A stretch of 59,256 nt of DNA, counting the filler, from Bipalium vagum (taxonomy: Eukaryota), in the NCBI GenBank assembly GCA_037834085.1. It is 3 parts of 3 records of this genome, joined end to end, with 100 filler letters (N's around TTAATTAATTAA, not from the genome) between each part and the next. Parts side by side here need not be neighbours in the genome. Positions count along the whole stretch, not along the records: positions 1 to 22,158 come from JBBMKC010225995.1; 2 more parts are not named here. One strand, given 5' to 3'. Positions within the stretch are counted from its first letter, which is position 1; every line of letters begins with the position of its first letter. Shown piece after piece: positions 4,134 to 19,910 of this stretch. The notes under the pieces were generated by a model. The model was given only the letters and a program-made list of their open reading frames with translations, did not search any database and was not told the DNA's origin. Position numbers and translations under genes: made by a program.

Positions 4134-7100
4134 TTATTCCAGTGGTTGGTGAAACTTGAAGTATGTCTAAAAAATGATTATTAGTCCAAAACTGATCAAA
4201 CCAAATCAAATGCTTACTTTAATCTCTAAATTCGGAAGTATAATGGCATTATCTTTTTGAGAAGTATTACTTTCATCTGTTGTATAATGAATAACTGCAG
4301 ACGATTCGATAGTTTGTTTCATAAAACAAGGAAGATCTTCTTGAGATTGAGATAAGTCAGATGAAGAATCATTAGTAACGTTCTGATTTTCATGGGAAAT
4401 AGATGACTTCGTAGAACTCAAAATAGAACTGGACTCTTCGGGAATGATACTGAGCTTTCCGTGTGATGGGCCTTCATAATTATTGCTAAACTTTGTAATA
4501 TTTCTAAAATTATGAGATCGTTGTGATTTTGTTGAATTTATCGAAGATTGGTGAGATATTTTCGGGGTACATTTTGAGGACTGGGGTCTATCAACAGGTG
4601 ACTGGCAGGATTTGCTTTCTGACTTACGGATAAAATTGAAGCATAGAATGGGGGCCAAACAATAATAATTCAACATTGAATGAGTCAGTCCAATAAAAGG
4701 CAGCAGAAAGAAGTGCCTAGTGACATAAATGATAAATAAAGAGAACAAACATGTGGAAATAATTAATTTTATATTTTATGATTGATTTGAACTTTGTCCG
4801 ACTATTAAATGTGAGAATCAGACAAGTGGGCAGTTAGGTGATAACTAAAGCTACTGATTGACTTAAATTTATTGTTAAATATTACCAATTGTTTGGCGAT
4901 AGCAACTCACTCGAATCGTGTCGCCAATGTGAATGGTGATACCGATGTTATATTATGTTTATAACTACCATAAATTAACATGACCCATGTGTAAGTGTAC
5001 ACGTACTTTATCAGCTACAGCTTTTACTTACTCAATTCCTTTGGTAACATTGTCTTAGAATTATTTTTTAAAATATTTTTCAGATCATTTTCATATTAAT
5101 TAGCTCACTTGTAAACTATCAAAAATATTATAACTTTTATATCTTTGCGTAACCAAGATTGAGAGTTATGACGAAGAATTAATTGTAAAAACTGGGAAAA
5201 ATAGCTTAAGATATGTGTGTATATATATTAGGTGTACCATTAAATAATACTGATTTTTTAAAAATCTATAATTATGATATAAGATAAAATAAATCATATT
5301 GATTATATATTGTATTTTATTTTAATATACATTGTTTACTAGGATAATCAGTAAAATAATATTTAAGTTTTAATATTTAAAATATTTTTAGATTTATTCT
5401 CGGAAAAGAGCATTTGCATGGAGTTATGACCCACTATTTTATTATGGGAAAAACTTCTGAAGAAACTTACCGCATACTTCGGGAAGTCTACGGGGAACAT
5501 GCACCAATAATAATGTAATAGTAAAATTTGCAATAAAGTAGAATATTATATTTTCAAATACACACCGATAGAATAAGACTTTCGAAATATTATCAAAATA
5601 ATTAATTTATTAATATTTTGTTACACAAGTCTAGAGATTGGGACAAAATAACTTTATTGAATCTAAAATCACGTGCATTGAAACATTTCCTTGTCCTATA
5701 TAAATATTTTTAATAAAACAATACTAACATTTCTCAATATCAATTAAAAGGTATGGAATAAAAGAAATTAATGATCAAGATATTTTATTCAATCCGAATC
5801 CAATCTGTTATTTGAGAGATCATTAATTTCCAATTTTGAAACATAGTCAGATTTTATCTCCTGTGTGTTTATTAAATATCACTTGTGTAGGAAATGTAAA
5901 TTGAAGTAACCCAAATCCCCATTAATTATACAGACTTGATTTGAATATAGTAAACTATAAATTTTATAAGATCATTTTCGTAAAAAAAATTATTCATTTA
6001 TAAATTTAATGGGTGATATCGCTTTCTTAATGTATTCCCGTTATTTCATAATTACTGAGGAAAATATTTTGAAAATAAAGTATCCCGGTAGCTCGGGTAT
6101 TCATTTTATGGAAGTATTTTACTGTCCAAAATAAACACAATTTTTCAGTTATGAATATAAACTTCTTCGGAGGGAAAAATGTCATTTACTGTAGAAAAAA
6201 TATCCAAAAACCCTTTTACCTCACAAGACGACATAGAATACAAAATAAAAACAAATAAATACGCATTGTGATGGATTTTTATTTATTTTTCTACGTGTCC
6301 GAATATAAATGAATTAAATTTCCAATCGTGATAAGAACATGAATAAATTTATTTAATAGTAATATTTTTTACTAATTATTTGCGTGCATTCAACGAATAA
6401 CGTTGTCAACAATATCGAAAATATCGTCGGAAATGTGTTAAATGTTTTTTTTTCAGTAAATCTGTTGAACTTCTTTTGGAATATGTTATAAAAATTGTCG
6501 ATAAAAATCCCATTTAAATCAAATCAAGTTTATCATAAAAATTAAGGAGAAAAAAAGAAGAAGAAAGAATTACGAACTATTTACTCTACACAATAATTCC
6601 AATAATTCACTAAAATCTCGTTATCATGCATTAACCCAAAATAATAACATGAAATTAGATTAATTCCTTTGACATGTGGTCCAGAAAGTCAATTTTTTTT
6701 TGATTTTCCCCTTTTTACCAATAATATGTACATGAAATTTTAATATCTCGTTATAATTAATTTTATCTGCGTAATTACCATCTCTCTCTTTTTTACTGAC
6801 TAATTCCATTGAATACATTTCAGTTGCAAAAAGTGGACCTTTCTTTAAACGATTGTCAATGAACGATTCTTAAGGAACATTAACTCAGTTGAAATATTCA
6901 TTCAACCCTTCATAGAAAATAATACCGCATTAAAGAAGACTTTTCTAATTAAAAAAAACATCTTTATTATAATTACTCGTTCACACAAACGGTACTGTTA
7001 ATTGTAAATTAGAAAGAGCTTTATTTCCTCAATAATTAGTCTTTAGCATTAATCAAATATAAAACTCTGAATCCGTTTTCGTTAAATAAGAAAATTCAAA

Positions 7101-10100
7101 AAAATCAGTAGTGTCAAACTAAAATACGGAATTTCTTTTTTAGTTTAAATTCTCTTTTGAAAATGTCGAGAGTAAAACAATTTTAGTAAAGATATCAAAA
7201 ATAATAATATAGAATATTTCAGAAGTCACAAATCTTGGACTATTTATAATTTTCCCATGAACTATAATTGGATATCAATTCCAAATTCACAAATGTACTA
7301 GTTAATAAATAAAATTAAGTAAATAAATAATTATATTATAAAACATAATTTGATTATCTGTGGCATTTATGAAACTGGATGATAAATATATTTGCACTAT
7401 TTATATTTTAATATTTCATTAATACATGATATTTGATATTCATAATAATAGTTTTGCATAATAGGTCTTGATAATTTTTACATTTTCGAACTTTCAAGAA
7501 ATAGTACTTTTTAAATAAATTCAATCATTTATTATATTCATTATTTTGATTGAAATTCGGTTAAAATACTAAAAATCTGGATTTTGTTTAAATTTATGTT
7601 GTTATGGTTACGTATTTTATTTTTTTATTTTAATGCAAAAAAATATGAAAATTAATATTTATAATATAATAAAATTAATATATATTGTGAAATTATTGTT
7701 ACTGCTATTGTTGGGGTTAGAATATATTTTTTCCAAATTTGAAAATTGGAAAATTGAAAGGACAATAGAAGATACCGTGAAAAAATTCATGAATAATAGA
7801 GAATGCAAGGAGAAGAAAGAAAAAGAGAAAAATGAATATAAGAAAATCATTAAAATTCCCTATTCGGAAGGATTCAAGATTTATTTATTTACAGACAATA
7901 AATAAAGGTCTAAAAGTAATATTTCTAACAGCGAAAACAAAGAATTTTTAAAAAATCAAAACAGTGACTCCAAAACCAATGCAAGCTAATATCGTGTACA
8001 AATTCCAATGTCATGGATGTGGTCATCTATACATAGGGGAGACACAATGTCACCTAAAGACACGAATTAGTGAGCATTCACAAAAAAGTAGAACAAGCAA
8101 AGTTTTGGATCATACTTTGAGCTGCAAAGAAAGAGAAGGAAATAAATATGCCAATGAAAATAAGTTTACTGTAGTAACGACCAACTTTGATAACGATGAA
8201 GAAAGAAAAATATGCGAATCATTAATAATTAAAGAAATCAAGCCTGAAAAAATTCACCAAATGGAGAAAGCAGAAATCAATGGATGATTAATATTTTCTA
8301 TAATTAATATTTTAAAAAATAATTATATATTTTTTTAAAAATTAAATACAATAACCATAGCAACATTAATTTTAACAAATTTAAAAATTGTGGTATTTTA
8401 ACCGAAGCAAATCAATAAATATATTTATTCTTTTATTATATTTATTATTTCAAGCATTTCTAAAATTTTCATTTCGTCAAATTTGTGTTCTTACAAATTG
8501 TTGAATAATATTTTTAGTTCATGTATAAAAATGAGTATTTGTTTTAAACTAAATTAATGAATAAATCCAAAATACTTTTAAAAGCTCAAAAACGCGTTTA
8601 TAGCTGAATATTAAATCTGTGAATATTAAATGTGAATAGCCTAATCAATTCCAATTCATGTTCTGTTCGTTCATAAGAATATGTATTTCCGATATAAGTG
8701 TATGAGTACTGTAAAAGGACATTTAATCTTTACTTTGTTGGAATCGTTTGCAAAATGAACATTAATTATGTATGTTTTCTTCATAACCATCATAACACCC
8801 ATTTTATACTGTTAAACAAAAGAAGTCCAATGAAATAAATGATTTTATAATTTAAACTAATAAAGTGAAATAACTTACTGCCATAAAAAGTCTATGTTTG
8901 TAAGCAATATAAATGCCATTCCGAGGAAAGTAGAGAACATTGCTTTTCCACACTGTACGTCTTCAAATGCTCGTTCCAACTGACTTTGTTTCTCACTTTC
9001 AGTAACCAATTTTATATTAGAAGGACATCGATCACTACACCGATTACAATTTAGTGAAAACAAATTGAGCGATTTATGGGTCGGCTGCGACTGATATTGG
9101 TCAACGTATGAAGCAATGAGAAACAAGGAAAATCGAAATCCTAAGCCTCCAGACCAAAGTGACATTACTCCGGAAGTGGCATTTAGGGGAATCTGATATA
9201 TATTCATAAATAAAATTGGGCTGAGTAAACTAGAACTCAATAATAAAGTTGCAAAAATGCTAGCCAAGAAATGGTTAATAGCTAAAAGACTGATGATGAA
9301 CATCCCGATACAAATAATTATGGTTGCCATCATCAATTGATAACGCAATTTTGTGTACTGTTCCGATAATGAGAATATGTTTCCAGTTGGGATTGATAAA
9401 ACTCCTTTCTTTGTGAATCTTCCAGTAATTGATCGAACAGCCTAAATTTAATGATACAATCTCAGATAAAAGACTCGTTCCTTTTAAATTAAAAAATTTG
9501 TGGGATCAGAAAAATTATATTAATTAAATTACTGATATTTTATGTTGGCAAAAACAGCATCTTGATTCAGGACGATAGATGATGCGATGCCATTTGTCAC
9601 TCAAATTTTGTCTTTCTTAATACCAGATAAATCTTACGGCTATATGATTTCGATGGTAAACTTCGCTTTGGGCAGTATAAGCGCAAAAATACTAATAAAT
9701 CTTTTTCTTAAGGTTCACTTTCCAATTGATGGCAATTTTTGTGGTCGGCATAAGTCTGACTTTAACAGGTTTCTATTTTCAGATTCATTGTTGCTTCGAT
9801 ATTGTCCACTACACTGTAAAGATGCTGCAACCCTATATAATAGCATGTAATTCATGTCCGTAACATGATGGAATGATTTTTTCCATATGTCTGGCAATTT
9901 CTCTGAAATATATTCCACCCTCATGATGTCCTACTATTGAACCTCTTTCAAAATTTCTATTTATTGTTTTTGTATTTTATTTTTTGTTTTAAATATAAAA
10001 ATATTTTTTTCAAAGAAATTAAAGGCAAATAATTTATTAATGACCAGAAACAATTTATTCTAAAACATTTAGTCCACAACACTTATTTTTTTAAAAAGTA

Positions 10101-13100
10101 TTTTTCAATATGCAATATTTATATTAATAAATTGAATGATTGGCTTAAATAATATCAAAAATTTTATTTTATTAATAAATAATTTCTTTAAAATATAAAC
10201 TTCTGATATTATATGTATATATATATATATAATTTTTATTTCTGATAGATTTGAAAATACTCTAGACCTGTTCTCTAACAAAAAATAACTTAAAAACATT
10301 AACATATTCATTAAAGTTGGTGACATTCGCTATCGCTGTGAACTTGATAATTGATCACATCAATAAATATTGATCACAATTTCAGATCATATCTTACCTT
10401 AACAAAATCAAAATCGTCCCTGTCTGATTGACCTTTGTAGAGATATTTACATGCTACAAATTGCAAAGGGTTTTGGGTAAACAAATTGGATCCTGATACT
10501 CTAATCACTGATGGTTCAGGTTTTCGTTCATTTGGAAGAAAATTTTCCATATTAAAGACGGGCAGTCTGGGATATAATATACAAGGCAACGTACCGGATT
10601 CAGCAGAAACTGATCTCCATACGTTAAGAAAAAGAAAAAAGTTGTCTTCATCAATTCTTTGAGCATTTAACAAACGGGATGTTCCTAACTAAATAATAAA
10701 AATAAAAATTTAAGCAATAGCATTGATAAATAATTAGTATTATTTTCAAAATTTAACTCCGGAAATTTTTTCAGTAAATAATAATGGGTCTGTCAAACTA
10801 ATGTTTACTCCAAAGGTGTCATTATCAATAAATAATACTGAAAAATTTATTTATATTTCTAAATGAATATTCATCGTGGAGAACTTTTCTAATTTAATCA
10901 GAACCAATCCAGAGAATATTAAATGTGATAATATTTTAAATTATTTGTTTCAACGTAACATAGGAAATAAAGAAATTTGTATTCATCTTCAGTTTGATAA
11001 ATATCATATTATGGGTGAGTAATATTTATATTTCAATTCAACGATTTTGATTCGCTCTTAAACGCAAAATCTGTCACTGCCTCACAATCGAAGTATAATT
11101 TTTAAAAAATATTTGTATCAAAATTTTAAATATTACACATCAACATACAATTGGCAATAGTTCAGCTAAACAAAACTTAATATTCAAAGATTTATTACGC
11201 TTTAAGTTTGTAAAGCTTCGTCTTTATTGACACCATGTGATATTTTATATTTGTATTATATTATATTATATATTTTATAAACTATTTGATGGTAGCAAAT
11301 TAGCGACTTTCAAACATTCCTAATATTATTATTTCCAAAACTATAATATTTTCTATTAAATATTTCAAATTACCTTCTTATAAGAAATATTTTCTCCATC
11401 TTGAGCCAATAAAGTCATTGTCAATAAGCCATTCTTTGAAGCATTTCTAAGAAAAGTGCCATTGGGAAAAATTAAATGAGCTTTCATATCTTCGTCAAAA
11501 TCTTTCTGAATATTTTGTAACCATGATATGAATGAAGAAAGCCAAAAATTTCCATTTTCTAACATTTCAACGCGAGGAAGTCCCTTAATTTCGTTGTGAA
11601 GTTGTAGCACAGAATCTTGGTGATAGGTATAATTAATTTTCTTAGTGATAATTTCGAACATTTGAAATCTGAAATACTTAGATTCATACTTGACGAAATT
11701 ATATTCGTTAGAATCGCGAATAAATATGGAATCCAAAAGTATACCACAATCTATGTTAATCGCTGAATAGAATCCCATAACAATTATCAAGATAGTTATT
11801 AAGATCATGGTTATCTGGACGGGAACTAAAACAATAATATGAAGAAAGGTCTTAGTTATTCGATATTGAAATCTCCACCAACATTGATGCTTATTGGGCT
11901 TATTCGTTTTTCTTTCAGACACTTTGGTTTTATGGAGTGAATTTGAGAAGGATTTCGGAAGAGTATTCATATCACTTTTTGGAGTATCAATAGGATTAAT
12001 TTCACAATATTGGTGAACATTATCTGGAATTAGATTGACTGAGGATGTTGTAAATTCTGTGGAAAATATCACTTTGCAATTCATCAGGTTTGATTCTTTC
12101 GGAGCTTTGTCATATTTCAAAGGGAATCCTTGAGACTCAGAGGATTTCTTAATATTTTCAGTTTGTAACTGACGTTTCACTAGGCAGCATAAAAGATCGA
12201 TTCTATTGTCTTGACGACGTATGGAATCTAGATGTAACAGACAAGGGTAAAGAAACACATTAACTGCAGTTTGTACCACAATAATGAAAAGTACCTTAAA
12301 ATAATAAAATTATTTGTAATAATTTTAAAAAATAATAATAATTTCTAATAATTATTATTATCAATTATAAATACTAGTGCTTATTTAATAAATAATTATA
12401 AATATTAGGCGTATGCATAAGTTCGAATCGCTGATATATATGTGGAATTTGAGTAATATTAATAATAATGTAACATCTAAAAATTTGTATTTTGTTTAAG
12501 TAAGTCAATATTGTTTATACGATAATTATTTATAGCATTAATTTGATAATTATTTTATGTATACCAATTCATTTGCAGAAATTATAATGGAAGTAGATAA
12601 AATGCATATACGCCACTGTATGTTGTTTTTGTTTAATCAGAGCAAAACATCAGCCGAAGCAACTCAGATCATTTGCATTACATATGATGATAGAGCAGTA
12701 GTCGAGAACTCATGTCATCGATGATTTGGAAGATTCAAAATCCGTGATTTTGATTTGAACGATAAATATAATATATAAATATTTGAACCCTAAGTTTTTG
12801 GAATATTTTAAAATCGCTAATTTTGTAATTATTACATTTTAAATATTTCATAAATTAAAAATTAAAATATATAATTCAAGTTAAGTACCGAATCATATTT
12901 AAATACTTTATGGAAATAGCGAACACAAATTTTTTCGTTGAAGTAATTACAATGAAACATAATATAAATATTATTTTCCGTCAGATCTCACCAAAAAATT
13001 CAAAAATAATATAATTTATTATAAAATTTATTGATTTTTATTGTCATTATTATCATTATATTATAATTTAAATATATTAAAATTTTACTGTAAAATAAAA

Positions 13101-16100
13101 TTACTAAATTAATTAATTAAAAATAATAAAACTTAATCAATAAGCTAAAATTACATTTAATAAAAAATTATTGATTTGAATTTTTCTACCATTTCACTAA
13201 AAGAAACTATTTGAAAATCAAATACTTTAATAAAAAATTTTTTAGTTAAAATGAAAGTCAAAGCAAATGTAAACACGTTAGTCTTATTAATTATGTATTA
13301 ATTAATAATACGTGAATACTTTTAATGTAAAAATTGTGATAATAAGCCAATTGTTTTATCAATATAAATATAAATGGCTTATATCTGAACAAAAATGACC
13401 ACGAACAGTAGACCAGGATAATTCGATAATGTTTGCAGAATTCAACTTTATAAAATGTCCCAAATTATTATTATTTGGTTGAAACTTGAACAGTGGAGGT
13501 GGTCTCCGTGAATCGCTCTCGATAATGTATAAATATGAACATTAATAAAATCAGTTAAGATTTTTAAGAAAATGAAAATTGTAAACAATTTTTTAAAAAA
13601 AATATATTTAATAAGAAAATCGACTGTTTATATCGCATTTGCCACACAACAACAAGCAGGTCATGTTAAATGAATATCATACAGATAGGCGGCCACGTTA
13701 TCAAAAGTTATTAGAATTTAGGACACCCGCAGTTATATAATAATAATTATAGTAATAATAATAACAATGATTAATAATAATAAGAAAAAATATAATAATA
13801 ATAATAATGATTAATAATAAAAGTGAATAATAATAATAAAAATAAATATTATATCGTAATAAAATAACATCTCATAAAGTTGAATTTATTACAGTTAATA
13901 ACAAATCATTAACAATATATACTTGAATACTAAAACTGTGCATCAAGGGTATAGGAATTAGAAGTGTAGAACTCATGATTGTAATTTTTGTGAGAAAGGA
14001 AACTAATAACATCTTGGCACAATCATAAAGAGTTTGAGCAACAGGGTTTGGATGACTCTTCTGAAAAGTGAAACGTCATTAATGATAAAAAGTGCAACAT
14101 GTTTTAAACTTTAGACTGATAAGAATCCATTGTTCTTGTGTACTTGTTTGTAAATATGACAACTTCATCTAATCCTAGCCCGATCATGAGAAAAGGAACA
14201 ATCTGGTTGTTGGACATAAAAACAAAACTGTTTTCTACAAACACAAACCTGAGTCGTTAAAGCGGAAAATGTGAATCCTGCAGCCGCTGTCAAACCCAAG
14301 CCGGAAAAGATGGCCGCTTCAAGTAGTAAAGTACTGATTATTGCAAGCCAACAATGTGATCGCACGCAGTTGTCAGTTGAAACGAAAATAACAACAAGGA
14401 ATAGCATCTAACAATAGTTGCAACAATAAATAGAATAATTTCAATAAAGATTTTTATTATTGTTCTAAATGTACTTTTTTTCAGCTTTAACTGTGAATGT
14501 ACAAAATGGAAATTTGAAATCCATTTTCTTTCAATAAATTACTAGGTTGTTCAATGTGAATTTTCGTTTTTTTAATCTTGGGTTTAATCAATCACAAGTC
14601 ATTTTAAAAGAGCTTTTTTAAAGAAAAGTAATCACCATCAGAATCAGTACATTTATTCCATTGTGAAATAAGTTTGTCTATGCCAGTAACATAAAACTCG
14701 GGAATTCTGAAATCGATGAATTGTTGAACAGCGTTTTCAAGTTTGTTTGGTAAAATAATTTTTTTCCTGTAAAAAAACGCCCAAGTGCCTTAAAATACGA
14801 AGGTCAGTTGACGACATATTTGTTGAATAAGGTAGATGAGCCAGAATTCGTAACCAAAATCTTCCAGTTCTTTAACATCAACCGTGAAACATGGTTTCGC
14901 ATTGTTGTGAAATAAAATTGTGCCAATTCGATTCACTAAAGTCAGGTGTTTTCAATGCAGTACTTTATGGCATGGACGGTTTTTTTAAAAATTTACAAAG
15001 AGTTAGTCCAAGTTTTAACCACCAAACAATCATCATTGTCGTCTTTTGATGCAATCTTTATCAATCCATTGCACTGATCGATGATGGTTATCATAAAGTA
15101 TCAATTTATCAATCAAAAAATGGTTCATTTCGATTGCTATTTTACTGCTTTCTTTGACCATGAAGTTGAATGCCAAAAAAGAAGTTCTTTAAACGACACC
15201 ATTGGGAACAAATTATAAATTAGGAAAAATCCCTACATTCATACCGCTTTTTAAGTCATAATTCACAATTTTTATAAGATTTTTGACCCACATAAAACTA
15301 CTTTAATGAGAATATATAACGATTATTTTATAAATAATATTTAGTTAACACGAAAACTAACGACGACGCCGAGGGATATGAAATATTTGACGGGTAATGT
15401 TTCATCATCCTTTGCCTGATTAAGAGCAACGTTCAAAGAATTATTGGTAAAAACATAAAATGAGGATTTTTTGGTTCTTTGGGATTGGAATTTAGGATCT
15501 CGGTAAGCAATGGATTTCAGATACGGTCTCTGCTTGTTGAATTTGATTACGGTCTAAATAAATTTAGTTATATGCTCCCCTGTATGTTTTTGGTGTTTCA
15601 CGTTAAATATATTATGTTTTAAAAAATCATGCGAATAAAAGGCTTACCTTACTCAATTCTTTCAGCCATAAATTTTTTATAGTTTGTACTGTTTTCTCTG
15701 TCCATTGTAAATCTTTATTTGTTAAACTTTGCAAAATATCACTTGAGCTTTTTAACAATAAAATCGATTGCAACCCTTTGTTTTCTTTTCCCAAAAATGT
15801 ATTCTTAGAATATCTGTAGAGGTTTTTTGCAAGTTGATAACATCCTTGATTCACAATTTCTTCAAATCCAATATTCTAATTAAAATTAAAAATATTTTTT
15901 TTAATAAATAATAATTGTTAATTCATTTGAAAATGTCGGGACTTGTTATAATCTAATTACTATGGTGATCCATAAGTTTACACCCTCTATCCCCTAAAAA
16001 TCAAAACTCTGCAAAACTTAAGAGACAAAAACATTATTTCAATAACATTTCTAATAAATCAATGGCAATCATTTATGTAAAATCATTTATTTATTTATTT

Positions 16101-19100
16101 AAAAATCAATTTATTTTATTTTTTTTGATTTTTTAGTAGGAATAATTCCAAAAAAAAATAATTGCACTTATACGAGATTTTTTAATTTTATCAAATTTGT
16201 CAAAAGATTCATATAAATTTTCATATAAATCGACACTGGTTTCAATAATCGCCAAAATATTACGGGAAAATATAATTTTGATATTTATATTTTTTTTATT
16301 TCCATCATTTTAAATTAATCTTCCATGAATATTTTGAATGTGTCAATGTCCACGACTGAAATTTATGAAAAAAATCCGACAGTCAAAATTTTGGGACTAT
16401 CAGACAATTCTACGAATCATAAAAATTTTTTTTCGGAATTAAATTTGGTCAATTGAGATTCAACTATAATTTCACATAATTATAATTTATTATCGGTCTC
16501 ATTACTTTTCAATAAAGTCTCTTAACGATTAAAATCAATTATCACCTCTTCTTGGGAAAACAGAAAATTAGGAATATAAATAATTGGTTGGTAAACCTAA
16601 AATGATTTATTTCTCAAATAGTTACTAATTAATACTTTTTCGATATTTCCTCCAATTTTCATTAACTGTTCATGAAATGGTGAAGTCATTATTGACCGAT
16701 ATTTTTAATTATTTTTTCAGTTATAATTATTTTTCTACTTTCTCGTTTCTTCTTCGCTGTTTTATTGTTATTTTTTTTATTTATTATTATTTTATAAAAA
16801 TTATAAATTGTGCTTTCTTCATAGAGCAATACAAGTTATATTAATATATTTCCATGATAATTAAGCTGTAAAAGATTCCATTATTCGTTTATCATTCTAT
16901 GAAATATATAACTACACTTTAACATGGGTTTTTTTTTAAGCAAAATTAGAATTGCATCTCTTATTAGTCGGCAAGAAAAGGGCTTTTGGTTATTAAGCGA
17001 TGGTTTATTTCAAAACGCTGAAAACTTTCTCCAAACAGAAATTGTTGATCTTTGTGGATCTTTGTTGATCTGACTGTCATTTTTCTAGAATTTCGACGAA
17101 AATAAAAAAAATGTTTACATATCACAACGAATATCGATTGATAAAGAAGATTCGTTTGAAAAAATTTCGATAAACAGATAAAATTTATTCTCGATTCGAA
17201 TGACGATTGAACCGGTGATTTGGCAACCAACATATCGGTTTACCGAAAACCGAGCTAGCAATATATCGCAGAGATTTTAGTAAATATTTTATCATGTGAA
17301 ATTTTATCATGTATTTTGGAAAATATGAGACTCCAGGGAAGAATAATCTGGCCACAAGCCAAATATATTAAAATGACAACAATATTTCGTTAAGGAAAAA
17401 TAATGTTTACAAGAAAGCGTAATATTAAATTCTATTTCCATTGCATAAAAACCCACGAAAAGATTTGGGACAAGAACCAAACGCCATGTTTCGTAATTTG
17501 GATTTCGTAGCCAAAATGATCGATGTAAAGATTAACTATGAAGAAAGAAAATTTTTCAGCAATTTTAATATAATAAATTTTTTTAATTAAATAAAGATTT
17601 GCAAAGTTTTTACGACCGTTTCTAAGTTGATCTATATTATTGGAACCAGTTTACCACGTGTTTAAGATTGCGTGCAATTTATGTAGGAGTTATTTCAAAT
17701 CAGTTTTGTGAATTAGGAAAATTAATTAATTAATTAGCAGAATGACTTGTATTTGCTATCATTAATTAAACCTATGTAAAATTATTTGTGCATTTATATT
17801 TAATTTATAAAATAATAATTTTCATTTTATTGTGATTTTCTACATTTAATTCAAATTATTTATTATTATATCTAAATATGGAATATTTTTTCAATTTATC
17901 AATAATTTCTAAATATTAAATAAAAATAATAAAAAGAAAAATATATTTCACAGTAAATTATGAAAAAAAGAATTACTAAAATTTATTTCCACACCCATAA
18001 AAATTATATATATATTCTAATAATAAATAATTTACATATAAATAAAATAATTTACACAAATTACAAAAATTTAAAAATATATTTCTAAGATATGTAATCA
18101 TGTTTTTTAAATAATATATATTACAAAATTATTTATGATTTCATAATAATAATTTTTAATATTTCACATAATATTTATTTTTCATTTTTTAAAATTTTTA
18201 TTTCTACTTGATATTATTATTATTATTATTATTAATTATTATTAATTATTATTATTATTATTATTATTATGATTTATTATTATTATTAATAATTGTCATC
18301 ATTATTATTATTTATTTATTATTTATTTTTCTGAACAATTATTATTTTAATGTCATAAATTAACTACAAAAAAATCAACCACATACCTTAATCTTTTTGT
18401 TCGGACAAAGTTGATCGGTTACGTCAATACACGGCTTGTTCATATATCCATTACTTATACCAGCTTCTTTAAATAAAGTTACAAAAAAATTATAGTACCA
18501 ATCGTTCTTGAATGCGATAAGGAAATCAGAAAAATTAAGGGAGCTCCAATTTATTGAAGGATAATCCCTAAAAAAGGAAATTGAATAAACAAAGAATTTT
18601 TGTGATCAGTTGTAAAAAATAAAACAAAAATCTAACTCATTTCTTGATATGCTGCTTCTAGAATCATGTTCAACTAGTTTGGATCCCTCCCAAAAGCAAT
18701 TTAACGGCGTAATGATTCTACACGGCATAATCTTTACAATACGACTCTGAATTAAACTATTATAAATTCACATGGTCCGTTCAGTTTAATAAACAAAAAT
18801 ATAAAATCCAACGTGGTAAATTATGAATCGAATTGTGAAAGTCTAACCCGTAAATCCTTGTCGACATATTGAATATTTGGAAATTCTATTCTCTGACAGA
18901 ACTCGCGGAATGAGAAAGTCCTGGATGACAAAAAATGATCTGAAATGAGAAGATCACATTAAGATCACTACCTTCCATCATACTGCAGTGTTAAATTTGT
19001 AATCATTTTTAATAATTGCAAATGCTCCAGTAAATATTGTGGGGACAAAAGGTTATCCACTGATACTTGAATAATAGTTTCAAAAGAGCCCGGATCGATC

Positions 19101-19910
19101 TGAGTACCAGATATGTGAGACATATACGTTGTTTCGTTATGCAGTCGAGAAGAATCTAAATGCACCAATAATTTAAAAAAAATAAAAAAATAATTGTAAT
19201 AACATGAATTTTTTATACACCCATTCCCCATTTTGAAATAAAATCACAAACAACAGTGAAAACATGACCGTTTGAAATTAATTAATATAAAATAAATAAA
19301 TATCAGTCAGTCCTGGTATCAAATCTTAAATGGAAATAAATAATGAGCAAAAATGAAAAACAAAGAAAAAATGTGAAATAAAAGTAACAATGATAATATT
19401 GACAATGGCTAATTACTAAGTAGACTTGACAAATATATATTTAATGTCTGTGAATTTCAAGAATCCTTCGCATACCGTGTAATAAAATTTTCTGAATCAA
19501 GAAAAATCTAATTTTAAAAGATACATAAAATTAAGTGACATTTGATCAAAAATTTCGATTTGAATAAAAATTTTAAAAAATTCAGTTAGGCTTATTATTT
19601 ATTTTTAAATGATCCTGGTACAAATACATATCTCCACACAATATCATAGTTGATCATCATTTCTCTTCAGTCCTATGCTACACCCGGTGTACGAGAAGTA
19701 GTGTAAAATTCGGAAATAGCAACATATATCTGAAATAAGTCATAAATAATAAAATTTGACATCGCATTTTTTCTTCTTTTTATCTTTTGGAAAACTGGCA
19801 GATTGGTATCGAATATCAGGTTAAGGATCACCGGTTTAATTGTTGAATTCCCATTAAATCTGTCAGGATAATTGGTTAGAGTCACATCATTTAGACAATT
19901 TCCATATTGA
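4134..19910 (-). CDS. ptc: Patched (Hedgehog receptor, RND/SSD family), divergent, multi-exon; 5' end uncertain
   Basis: Phase-compatible GT-AG exons (minus): 19155-18972 (SSRLHNETTY...NLLSPQYLLEHL), 18920-18848, 18746-18637 (PCRIITPLNCFWEGSKL), 18567-18387 (GYMNKPCIDVTDQLCP), 15875-15648 (QGCYQLA...), 15553-15362, 14407-14249 (GLGLTAAAGFTFSALTTQ), 14202-14110 (IVPFLMIGLGLDEV), 14060-13923 (LIPIPLMHSFSIQ), 12294-11374 (YPCLLHLDSIRRQDNRIDLLCC; NFWLSSFISWLQNIQKDFD), 10688-10398, 9441-8879 (PTGNIFSLSEQY, TM8-11), 4716-4218 (QHFF, TM12, C-tail). A probable 33-nt last exon is at 4166-4134. The motifs are collinear with PTCH1/Drosophila Ptc. The N-terminal/TM1 exon(s) probably lie in 19220-19910 but were not resolved. 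Confidence 0.93.
5228..5507 (+). mobile_element. Mariner (Mos1-like) 5' fragment in Patched intron
   Basis: TA|ttaggtgtaccattaaataatactga TIR. FILGKEHLHGVMTHYFIMGKTSEETYRILREVYGEHAP is the mariner N-terminal HTH. Confidence 0.85.
7546..8415 (+). mobile_element. Penelope-like retroelement relic (GIY-YIG endonuclease) flanked by inverted repeats
   Basis: ORF 7964-8287 NIVYKFQCHGCGHLYIGETQCHLKTRISEH...RKICESLII is a Penelope-type GIY-YIG. Upstream KIPYSEG is a linker motif. Degenerate inverted repeat 7546-7618 / 8343-8415. Confidence 0.85.
9540..9930 (-). mobile_element. piggyBac transposase C-terminal relic
   Basis: IWKKSFHHVTDMNYMLLYR resembles WWKKLFFHLLDMxxxNAYLLYR. Downstream SDKWHRIIYRPESRCCFCQHK resembles the start of the Cys-rich domain. 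Confidence 0.55.
12405..12766 (+). mobile_element. Mariner 5' fragment in Patched intron
   Basis: TA|ttaggcgtatgcataagttcg TIR. From ATG 12587: MEVDKMHIRHCMLFLFNQSKTSAEATQIICITY...R*FGRFKIRDFDLND (mariner HTH with a stop). Confidence 0.85.
14542..15210 (-). mobile_element. Mariner 3' half relic in Patched intron
   Basis: Minus strand HNNAKP (HDNARPH), HLPYSTNMSSTD (HPPYSPDLAPSD) and EFYVTGIDKLISQWNKCTDSDGDYFS*. TIR TA|ctaggttgttcaatgtgaa matches the 3344 TIR family. Confidence 0.85.
17000..17560 (+). mobile_element. Possible heavily decayed Tc1-like relic
   Basis: ILSCILENMRLQGRII resembles Tc1 TIxRxLxxxGLxGRxA, and HCIKPTKRFG resembles PTVKHG. Many stops. Confidence 0.35.
18210..18330. repeat. 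Imperfect (TTA)n microsatellite
   Basis: Interrupted TTA/TAT run in a Patched intron. Confidence 0.85.

Follow-up and report, generated by a model that had tools for sequence, protein, structure and literature searches.

The stretch of DNA analysed in this study, in the following called the window, comprises 59,256 nucleotides of the genome of Bipalium vagum. On its minus strand, at 4206..19155, it carries the single, intact Patched (Hedgehog receptor) orthologue of this triclad planarian. Exons 2-14 of the gene, i.e., approximately 1213 codons and the stop codon, are located inside the window; the exon numbers are our own, and further coding exon(s) upstream are placed outside the window on contig C195937. 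In human PTCH1, three acidic residues lie in the centre of the membrane domain, D513 and D514 in the GxxxDD motif of transmembrane helix 4 (TM4) and E1095 in the GxxxE/D motif of TM10 (PMC9949057). In the B. vagum protein the acid of TM10 is replaced by Arg, and this replacement is the subject of our analysis.

Direct codon reading and translation give IGLGLDEVV for window:14158-14184(-) in TM4 and GGLGFRFSLF for window:9121-9150(-) in TM10. The acidic pair of TM4 (14164..14169 (-)) is composed of Asp (gat, 14169-14167) and Glu (gaa, 14166-14164), which correspond to PTCH1 D513/D514 and to D407/D408 of E. coli AcrB. The Arg of TM10 (cga, 9133..9135 (-)) is found at the position of PTCH1 E1095 and AcrB K940, central in a hydrophobic segment of approximately 24 residues, and four residues past it a Phe (9121..9123 (-)) takes the position of PTCH1 H1099. 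Judged by the triad, the window Patched possesses the first TM4 acid, has Glu as the second and lacks the TM10 acid. A planarian-specific Lys in TM5 (13986..13988 (-)) is tentatively assigned to PTCH1 N555 or a position adjoining it, with a register of plus or minus one residue, and may represent a second base of the charge cluster.

The TM4 Asp-Glu, the TM10 Arg and the Phe had been pointed out in an earlier note on this DNA, and are borne out both by our direct reading and by Logan contigs. The contigs of DNA run X1 (word depth approximately 20-23) cover 8800-11053 and 13855-14500 with 0 differing letters. X1 is the only public run containing the stretch and may be the assembly's own sample, so that it does not count as independent biology; since the TM4 and TM10 codons are reproduced, an assembly slip can be dismissed.

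A profile of 8 flatworm Patched sequences was aligned by hhalign to a profile of 10 canonical Patched sequences, the latter composed of fish PTCH1 (with the TM10 string quoted in the earlier note), hemichordate, ascidian, cnidarian, mollusc and nematode members. Both profiles align end to end with a probability of 100%. In TM4, G-I-G-L-D-E is placed on G-V-G-V-D-D, and in TM10, S-G-G-L-G-F-R-F on S-V-G-I-G-V-E-F, in both cases gapless and with confidence 9 in every column. Pairwise BLASTP yields the identical pairing of Arg and Glu, and hhalign places no other acidic residue at or beside the position of the TM10 Arg. The gapless equivalence to PTCH1 D513/D514/E1095 claimed by the earlier note is thus confirmed. 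For the corresponding residues of AcrB, which were read together with R971 on the K-12 gene, GLLV-DD is aligned to GLGL-DE and GLSA-K to GLGF-R with a local confidence of 7-9, AcrB being a very distant homologue with an overall probability of 34%. Elsewhere in the profile alignment of the window Patched, PTCH1 H520 is replaced by Asn, H1099 by Phe and D1128 by Gly; at the last position Schmidtea shows Gly as well, and Dugesia Asp.

The identity of the gene as Patched, likewise claimed before, is corroborated by the NCBIfam model TIGR00918, by PTCH1 chains among solved structures and by colinearity with planarian proteins. All searches were run per exon, and no joined protein was used. The family-identifying exon 11 matches TIGR00918 ('transmembrane receptor Patched') at 2.8e-29 versus 0.0039 for the NPC1 model TIGR00917. 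Taken over the gene, exon matches span TIGR00918 model positions 169-1043, the whole-protein cut-off of this model being unreachable by single exons. Against solved structures, exon 11 finds PTCH1 chains only (best 1.7e-21 over PTCH1 572-854). Vertebrate PTCH1 (6DMB, 6E1H, 7K65 etc.) and the window Patched have in common the 12-TM resistance-nodulation-division (RND) fold, a probable sterol-sensing domain, two ectodomains and the first TM4 Asp, whereas they differ in D513/D514/E1095 versus D/E/R.

Scanning 1.84 billion representatives by HMMER with exon 11 returned one close relative, the Patched protein of Dugesia japonica (BAI49944.1 / D0VYP1), which is 63% identical, and a word search also found that of Schmidtea mediterranea (D2ILS0, Smed-ptc). 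By tblastn, D. japonica aa 71-1305 and S. mediterranea aa 71-1310 map colinearly onto the window with 58-63% identity in the large exons; colinearity extends from aa 71 to the end and includes an insert in the loop after TM10. All three proteins share the TM10 block SGGLGFRFSLFLI without a difference. The window Patched is approximately 60% identical to the Dugesia and Schmidtea proteins, which are 70% identical to each other, and thus the window species represents a third, more distant triclad. Matches of exons 8 and 9 to PF12349 / PF02460 (E 2.5e-4 to 8e-3) stay below the gathering scores, these exons comprising only 31-53 codons; the orthologous planarian proteins carry PF12349, PF02460, and PF27572. 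No match to Pfam and PDB was obtained with the TM10 exon alone, and a word search with it was empty, a blank without weight as its length limits the candidates.

The splice model, derived exon by exon, reveals 13 coding exons in the window, GT..AG borders in 12 of 12 introns, intron lengths of 46-4162 bases and 0 stops within the frame. The following coordinates all refer to the minus strand. The first ectodomain (ECD1) starts in exon 2 (18972..19155), which is followed by exon 3 (18848..18920), placed by the splice model, and by exon 4 (18637..18746), which contains the conserved MPC.IITPLNCFWEGSK block of ECD1 and is backed by tblastn, a profile match and the splice model. Exons 5 (18387..18567) and 6 (15648..15875) belong to ECD1, and exon 7 (15362..15553) comprises its end and the start of TM2. 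TM2-TM3 of the probable sterol-sensing domain are encoded by exon 8 (14249..14407), TM4 with GLGL-D-E by exon 9 (14110..14202) and TM5 by exon 10 (13923..14060). Exons 8 and 9 are given by Pfam and NCBIfam matches together with the splice model and, in case of exon 9, by codon reading. Exon 11 (11374..12294) encodes TM6, the cytoplasmic loop, TM7 and the first half of the second ectodomain (ECD2), which continues in exon 12 (10398..10688). Exon 13 (8879..9441) contains the end of ECD2, TM8-TM10, the planarian-specific loop insert and TM11, while TM12, the C-terminal tail and the stop codon are found in exon 14 (4206..4716). For exons 2, 5, 6, 7, 10, 12, 13, and 14, tblastn and the splice model agree. 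The insert between TM10 and TM11 (window 9070-8950 (-)) is an in-frame stretch of approximately 35-60 residues that occurs in three of three planarian Patched proteins and is absent from canonical Patched; its sequence is poorly conserved, and in B. vagum it is rich in Cys and Ser.

An exon for residues 5-72 of Patched, including TM1, is located on the separate 4.5-kb contig (C195937:1461-1664), inside the 5' stretch C195937:1380-1720. Its last base and the first two bases of exon 2 form an Asn codon, as the orthologues predict. The count of 13 exons with an intact frame in the earlier note therefore holds for the window, with further 5' exon(s) on C195937. Upstream of the C195937 exon, a 6-base micro-exon, ATG-AAG, with a GT donor and a 75-base intron probably provides the start, in which case the Schmidtea and Dugesia proteins would extend approximately 5 residues further at the N-terminus.

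Two introns harbour traces of other coding sequence. The exon 13/14 intron (4.2 kb) contains a 107-codon open reading frame (ORF) at 7964-8287 (+) with a match to the GIY-YIG family PF01541 just under the cut-off (E 2.2e-4), which was probably left behind by a mobile element of the Penelope-like or another GIY-YIG type. In the exon 10/11 intron, an ORF fragment at 12557-12724 (+) matches HTH_48 of Mos1/mariner transposases (E 7e-12). The summed contig depth at 12429-12619 is approximately 2800 versus approximately 20 elsewhere, and this stretch is therefore a high-copy mariner-like repeat.

No second Patched was found in the 440-Mb assembly, which is fragmented into 272,664 contigs, when it was queried with TIGR00918, with Schmidtea Patched and with a canonical Patched of a mollusc. 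A second, canonical ptc, considered in the earlier note, is thus not among the genes recovered. Three candidates were rejected. A 245-bp contig (C124068:1-245) with a canonical-looking Patched TM5 exon is a probable foreign contaminant rather than a paralogue: its GC content is 49% versus 34.5% in exons and 24% in introns of the window Patched, and its best matches are non-flatworm Patched sequences at 44-51%. Most likely it stems from another animal in the sample, its likeness to vertebrates being too low for human DNA. C153959 is NPC1-like, with GVDN in TM4, and C38338 encodes another protein with a sterol-sensing domain (GIGCDN). The latter contig has an ORF of 543 uninterrupted codons at 688-2319, matching PF12349 at 4.5e-10, which is possibly Dispatched- or PTCHD-like.

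The ligand is represented in the assembly, in line with the genome check for hh proposed earlier: an exon for the C-terminal half of the Hedgehog N-terminal signalling domain is located at C225144:11151-11465 (+) and matches PF01085 above the cut-off (29.8 bits). For S. mediterranea, both Smed-smo and gli-1 have been described (PMC5153250).

Moving from B. vagum to other flatworms, the charge sites show a consistent pattern. TM4 and TM10 read GIGL-D-E and GLGF-R in D. japonica and GLGL-E-E and GLGF-R in S. mediterranea. Trematodes, represented by Paragonimus, Opisthorchis, Clonorchis, Dicrocoelium, Calicophoron, Schistosoma turkestanicum, Trichobilharzia, and Heterobilharzia, reveal G.G.-D-(S/G) in TM4 and GLGA-R in TM10, and the cestode Mesocestoides shows GLGM-E-G and GLGS-K. 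The TM10 residue is basic in 12 of 12 flatworm Patched sequences (3 planarian, the rest trematode and cestode), the first TM4 position is acidic (Asp or Glu) in every one examined, and the TM core motifs GxGx-acid, SxGxG-base, PFL, and IPIP are invariant. Trematode and cestode proteins (e.g., Clonorchis 'patched 1', S. turkestanicum, Mesocestoides corti) share the clade and the TM10 Arg or Lys with the window Patched, but have one TM4 acid only (D-S, D-G, or E-G), are much longer (1300-2050 aa) and are 25-28% identical. The outgroups, namely Acropora, Batillaria, Trichuris, filarial and rhabditid nematodes, Saccoglossus, Ciona, and fish, have Glu at the TM10 position.

When 30 Patched proteins are placed in a maximum-likelihood tree, the 11 from flatworms group together as one clade (SH-aLRT, the Shimodaira-Hasegawa-like approximate likelihood ratio test, 100) whose internal topology follows the species tree; a single change therefore suffices to explain the basic residue. 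The branches of this clade sum to approximately 5 substitutions per site. Over this distance the only change at the TM10 position is from Arg to Lys, and at the first TM4 position from Asp to Glu, while an average site would, by a rough estimate, remain unchanged with a probability of <1%. This conservation reads as a signature of purifying selection on the acid-base pair of TM4 and TM10. To judge from these sequences, the TM10 Arg is an ancient, clade-wide trait, fixed before triclads and neodermatans split and held since then as Arg or Lys. It is thus no oddity of this gene but is shared by triclads and trematodes, with Lys in the cestode, so that the lineage conservation considered in the earlier note is found. 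No Patched sequences were recovered from Macrostomum, polyclads, and catenulids; the last word search with an alignment added only Trichobilharzia and Logan transcripts. For lack of these earlier-branching flatworms, the change can be placed no more precisely than ahead of the split between triclads and neodermatans. Scanning metagenomes with the flatworm alignment yielded no relatives.

Departures from the acidic triad are also found in arthropods. In Drosophila montana (XP_064543470.1) and Drosophila virilis (XP_002049872.1), Ptc reads GLGVDH in TM4 and GMMLCF in TM10 (D-H-C) and thus retains one of three triad acids; as in the window Patched, the full triad is absent from a functional Hedgehog receptor, but here the TM10 residue is neutral, no positive charge is conserved, and the His at +4 is kept. 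Ptc of a wasp has H-D in TM4 and His in TM10, that of a mayfly S-D and Gln, and that of a copepod D-A and Gln. Beetle Ptc (Diabrotica, Anthonomus) shows GLAM-R-E in TM4, a motif also seen in one further protein, while its TM10 does not align. A Patched-like protein of a tardigrade lacks an acid in TM4 and carries Arg at the TM10 site. As the deviations in arthropod Ptc, Drosophila included, show, a Hedgehog receptor can work without the TM10 Glu. Several ecdysozoan lines have remodelled the charge cluster independently, and what distinguishes flatworms is a conserved positive charge in TM10 paired with a conserved acid.

Functional evidence is available both for the site and for an orthologue. 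In simulations of PTCH1, D513, D514, and E1095 are all within 0.3 nm of a bound Na+/K+ in >80% of frames, and H520 and D1128 are named as residues of a second cation site (PMC9949057). The mutation D513Y abolishes repression, and in vertebrate PTCH1 mutation of the triad abolishes repression of Smoothened (PMC9949057). PTC-3 of C. elegans cannot do without its first TM4 Asp, as seen with D697A (PMC3078328). As a fixed rule for Patched, the requirement for a D-D-E triad stated in the earlier note goes too far, given D-H-C in Drosophila and the deviations in other arthropods. Zhang et al. are said to have found in 2018 that a PTCH1 mutant with an NNQ triad loses Smoothened repression. In S. mediterranea, RNA interference (RNAi) of ptc raises and RNAi of hh lowers the same targets (PMC5055395): if-1/cali-positive cells per mm2 number 169 after hh RNAi, 2136 in controls and 3354 after ptc RNAi (PMC5055395). 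From these opposite effects it follows that Schmidtea Patched, with its E-E-R cluster, represses the pathway. A dead or decoy Patched in flatworms is thus unlikely.

We consider an AcrB-like protonation switch at a buried acid-base pair the most likely reading of the window gene, its identity as Patched included, and would give it about an even chance of being right. An unpaired charge in the middle of a hydrophobic helix is very costly, and an Arg in mid-membrane would not be expected to stay unpaired; it would rather be joined to the acid or acids of TM4 in a buried ion pair. In PTCH1, D513/D514/E1095 contact one ion within 0.3 nm, and therefore, by homology, a guanidinium at position 1095 would reach the TM4 carboxylates. 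Such a pair would sit where PTCH1 binds Na+/K+, and the coupling site would become acid/acid/base, as in bacterial RND pumps driven by protons (D407/D408/K940 in AcrB). As the acid takes up and releases its proton, the pair would be broken and formed again, TM4 and TM10 would move, and sterol would be moved in turn. The charges balance without a metal ion, with one acid and one base in trematodes and two acids, Arg and the TM5 Lys in planarians; a metal-cation site is not expected in the window Patched. The wider proposal, that flatworm Patched as a whole changed its coupling from Na+/K+ at an anionic triad to AcrB-like proton coupling at an Asp/Glu-Arg site, is more doubtful, and we put it forward as a tentative one.

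Several observations weigh against the protonation switch. The overall hhalign probability with AcrB is only 34%, though both helices align well, and no counterpart of AcrB R971 was found with confidence in TM11 by hhalign with the flatworm profile. The TM5 Lys (13988-13986) might fill the part of R971, with a register uncertain by one residue. AcrB is a trimeric drug exporter of the bacterial inner membrane with its large proton-motive force, and the proton gradient across animal plasma membranes is only small. Ptc of Drosophila is functional with D-H-C, and the site may tolerate many states and matter less than assumed. Moreover, ptc RNAi demonstrates repression of the pathway, which is not itself transport (PMC5055395).

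The strongest competitor assumes that the Arg permanently fills the cation site as a tethered cation and neutralises the TM4 acid. Patched would then be uncoupled and free of ion gradients, conducting sterol passively or by facilitation or resting in one fixed conformation, with accessible sterol still lowered enough to restrain Smoothened. The charge balance reached without a metal ion in trematode and planarian Patched fits this idea, as does the loss of the second cation site residues H520 and D1128 from the window protein, and Drosophila Ptc likewise lacks the full triad. Yet the strict retention of both partners over approximately 5 substitutions per site agrees at least as well with a working switch, and the damage done by loss of the first TM4 acid in PTCH1 (D513Y) and PTC-3 (D697A) points to chemistry at the site. 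We therefore regard a permanently tethered cation as possible but on the unlikely side. Less probable by a clear step is a transport-dead receptor, one of the options of the earlier note, in which flatworm Patched would only bind or sequester Hedgehog and repression would take another route. The effect of triad mutations on vertebrate PTCH1 (PMC9949057) speaks for it, but S. mediterranea ptc RNAi activates Hedgehog targets (PMC5055395), the invariant TM core motifs with their conserved acid and base would be needless in a pure binder, and with Patched a single-copy gene, the genome contains no other ptc for the job.

That the Arg is an artefact, or the gene a pseudogene or a neutrally drifting duplicate, appears very improbable. 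The fragmentation of the assembly would be its main attraction; against it, the codons are reproduced at approximately 20x in the Logan contig build, the 13 exons have clean splice sites and 0 stops, and only one locus exists in the genome. In addition, the same residue type occurs in the D. japonica and S. mediterranea entries and in 9 neodermatan genomes. Both planarian entries we take to be cDNA-derived. The argument of the earlier note against a read error or pseudogene decay thus receives support from the Logan contigs, the GT..AG introns, the open frame and conservation among orthologues, while the unexpressed, neutrally evolving duplicate it had named as a refutation is disfavoured by the single copy and by the conservation of both acid and base.

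Planarian Patched sequences have been public since 2009. Full-text searching of the literature retrieved work on the genetics of planarian ptc and work on the PTCH1 triad, but no paper that links both or names the flatworm substitution. The TM10 Arg is thus an unremarked feature of known genes. For annotation, it follows that the D-D-E triad is unsafe as a universal signature of Patched, being absent in flatworm and arthropod members.

For vertebrate PTCH1, the source of power is debated, and so is whether the charge cluster binds a cation, relays protons or is dispensable. Flatworms provide a natural experiment on the driving force of Patched, as their protein is genetically functional, has exchanged the TM10 acid for a conserved positive charge and has kept the essential TM4 acid. 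Planarian Patched with two acids and trematode Patched with one constitute a ready pair of natural variants. If the protonation switch is true, the coupling ion would have changed naturally among the orthologues of a single family of signalling transporters in animals, and the change would have stayed fixed over several hundred million years. Taken along with the degenerate triads of arthropods, the coupling chemistry of Patched would then be evolutionarily plastic while repression of Smoothened is conserved. Parasitic flatworms rely on host sterols, and a differently coupled Patched would be a biochemical difference from the host protein.

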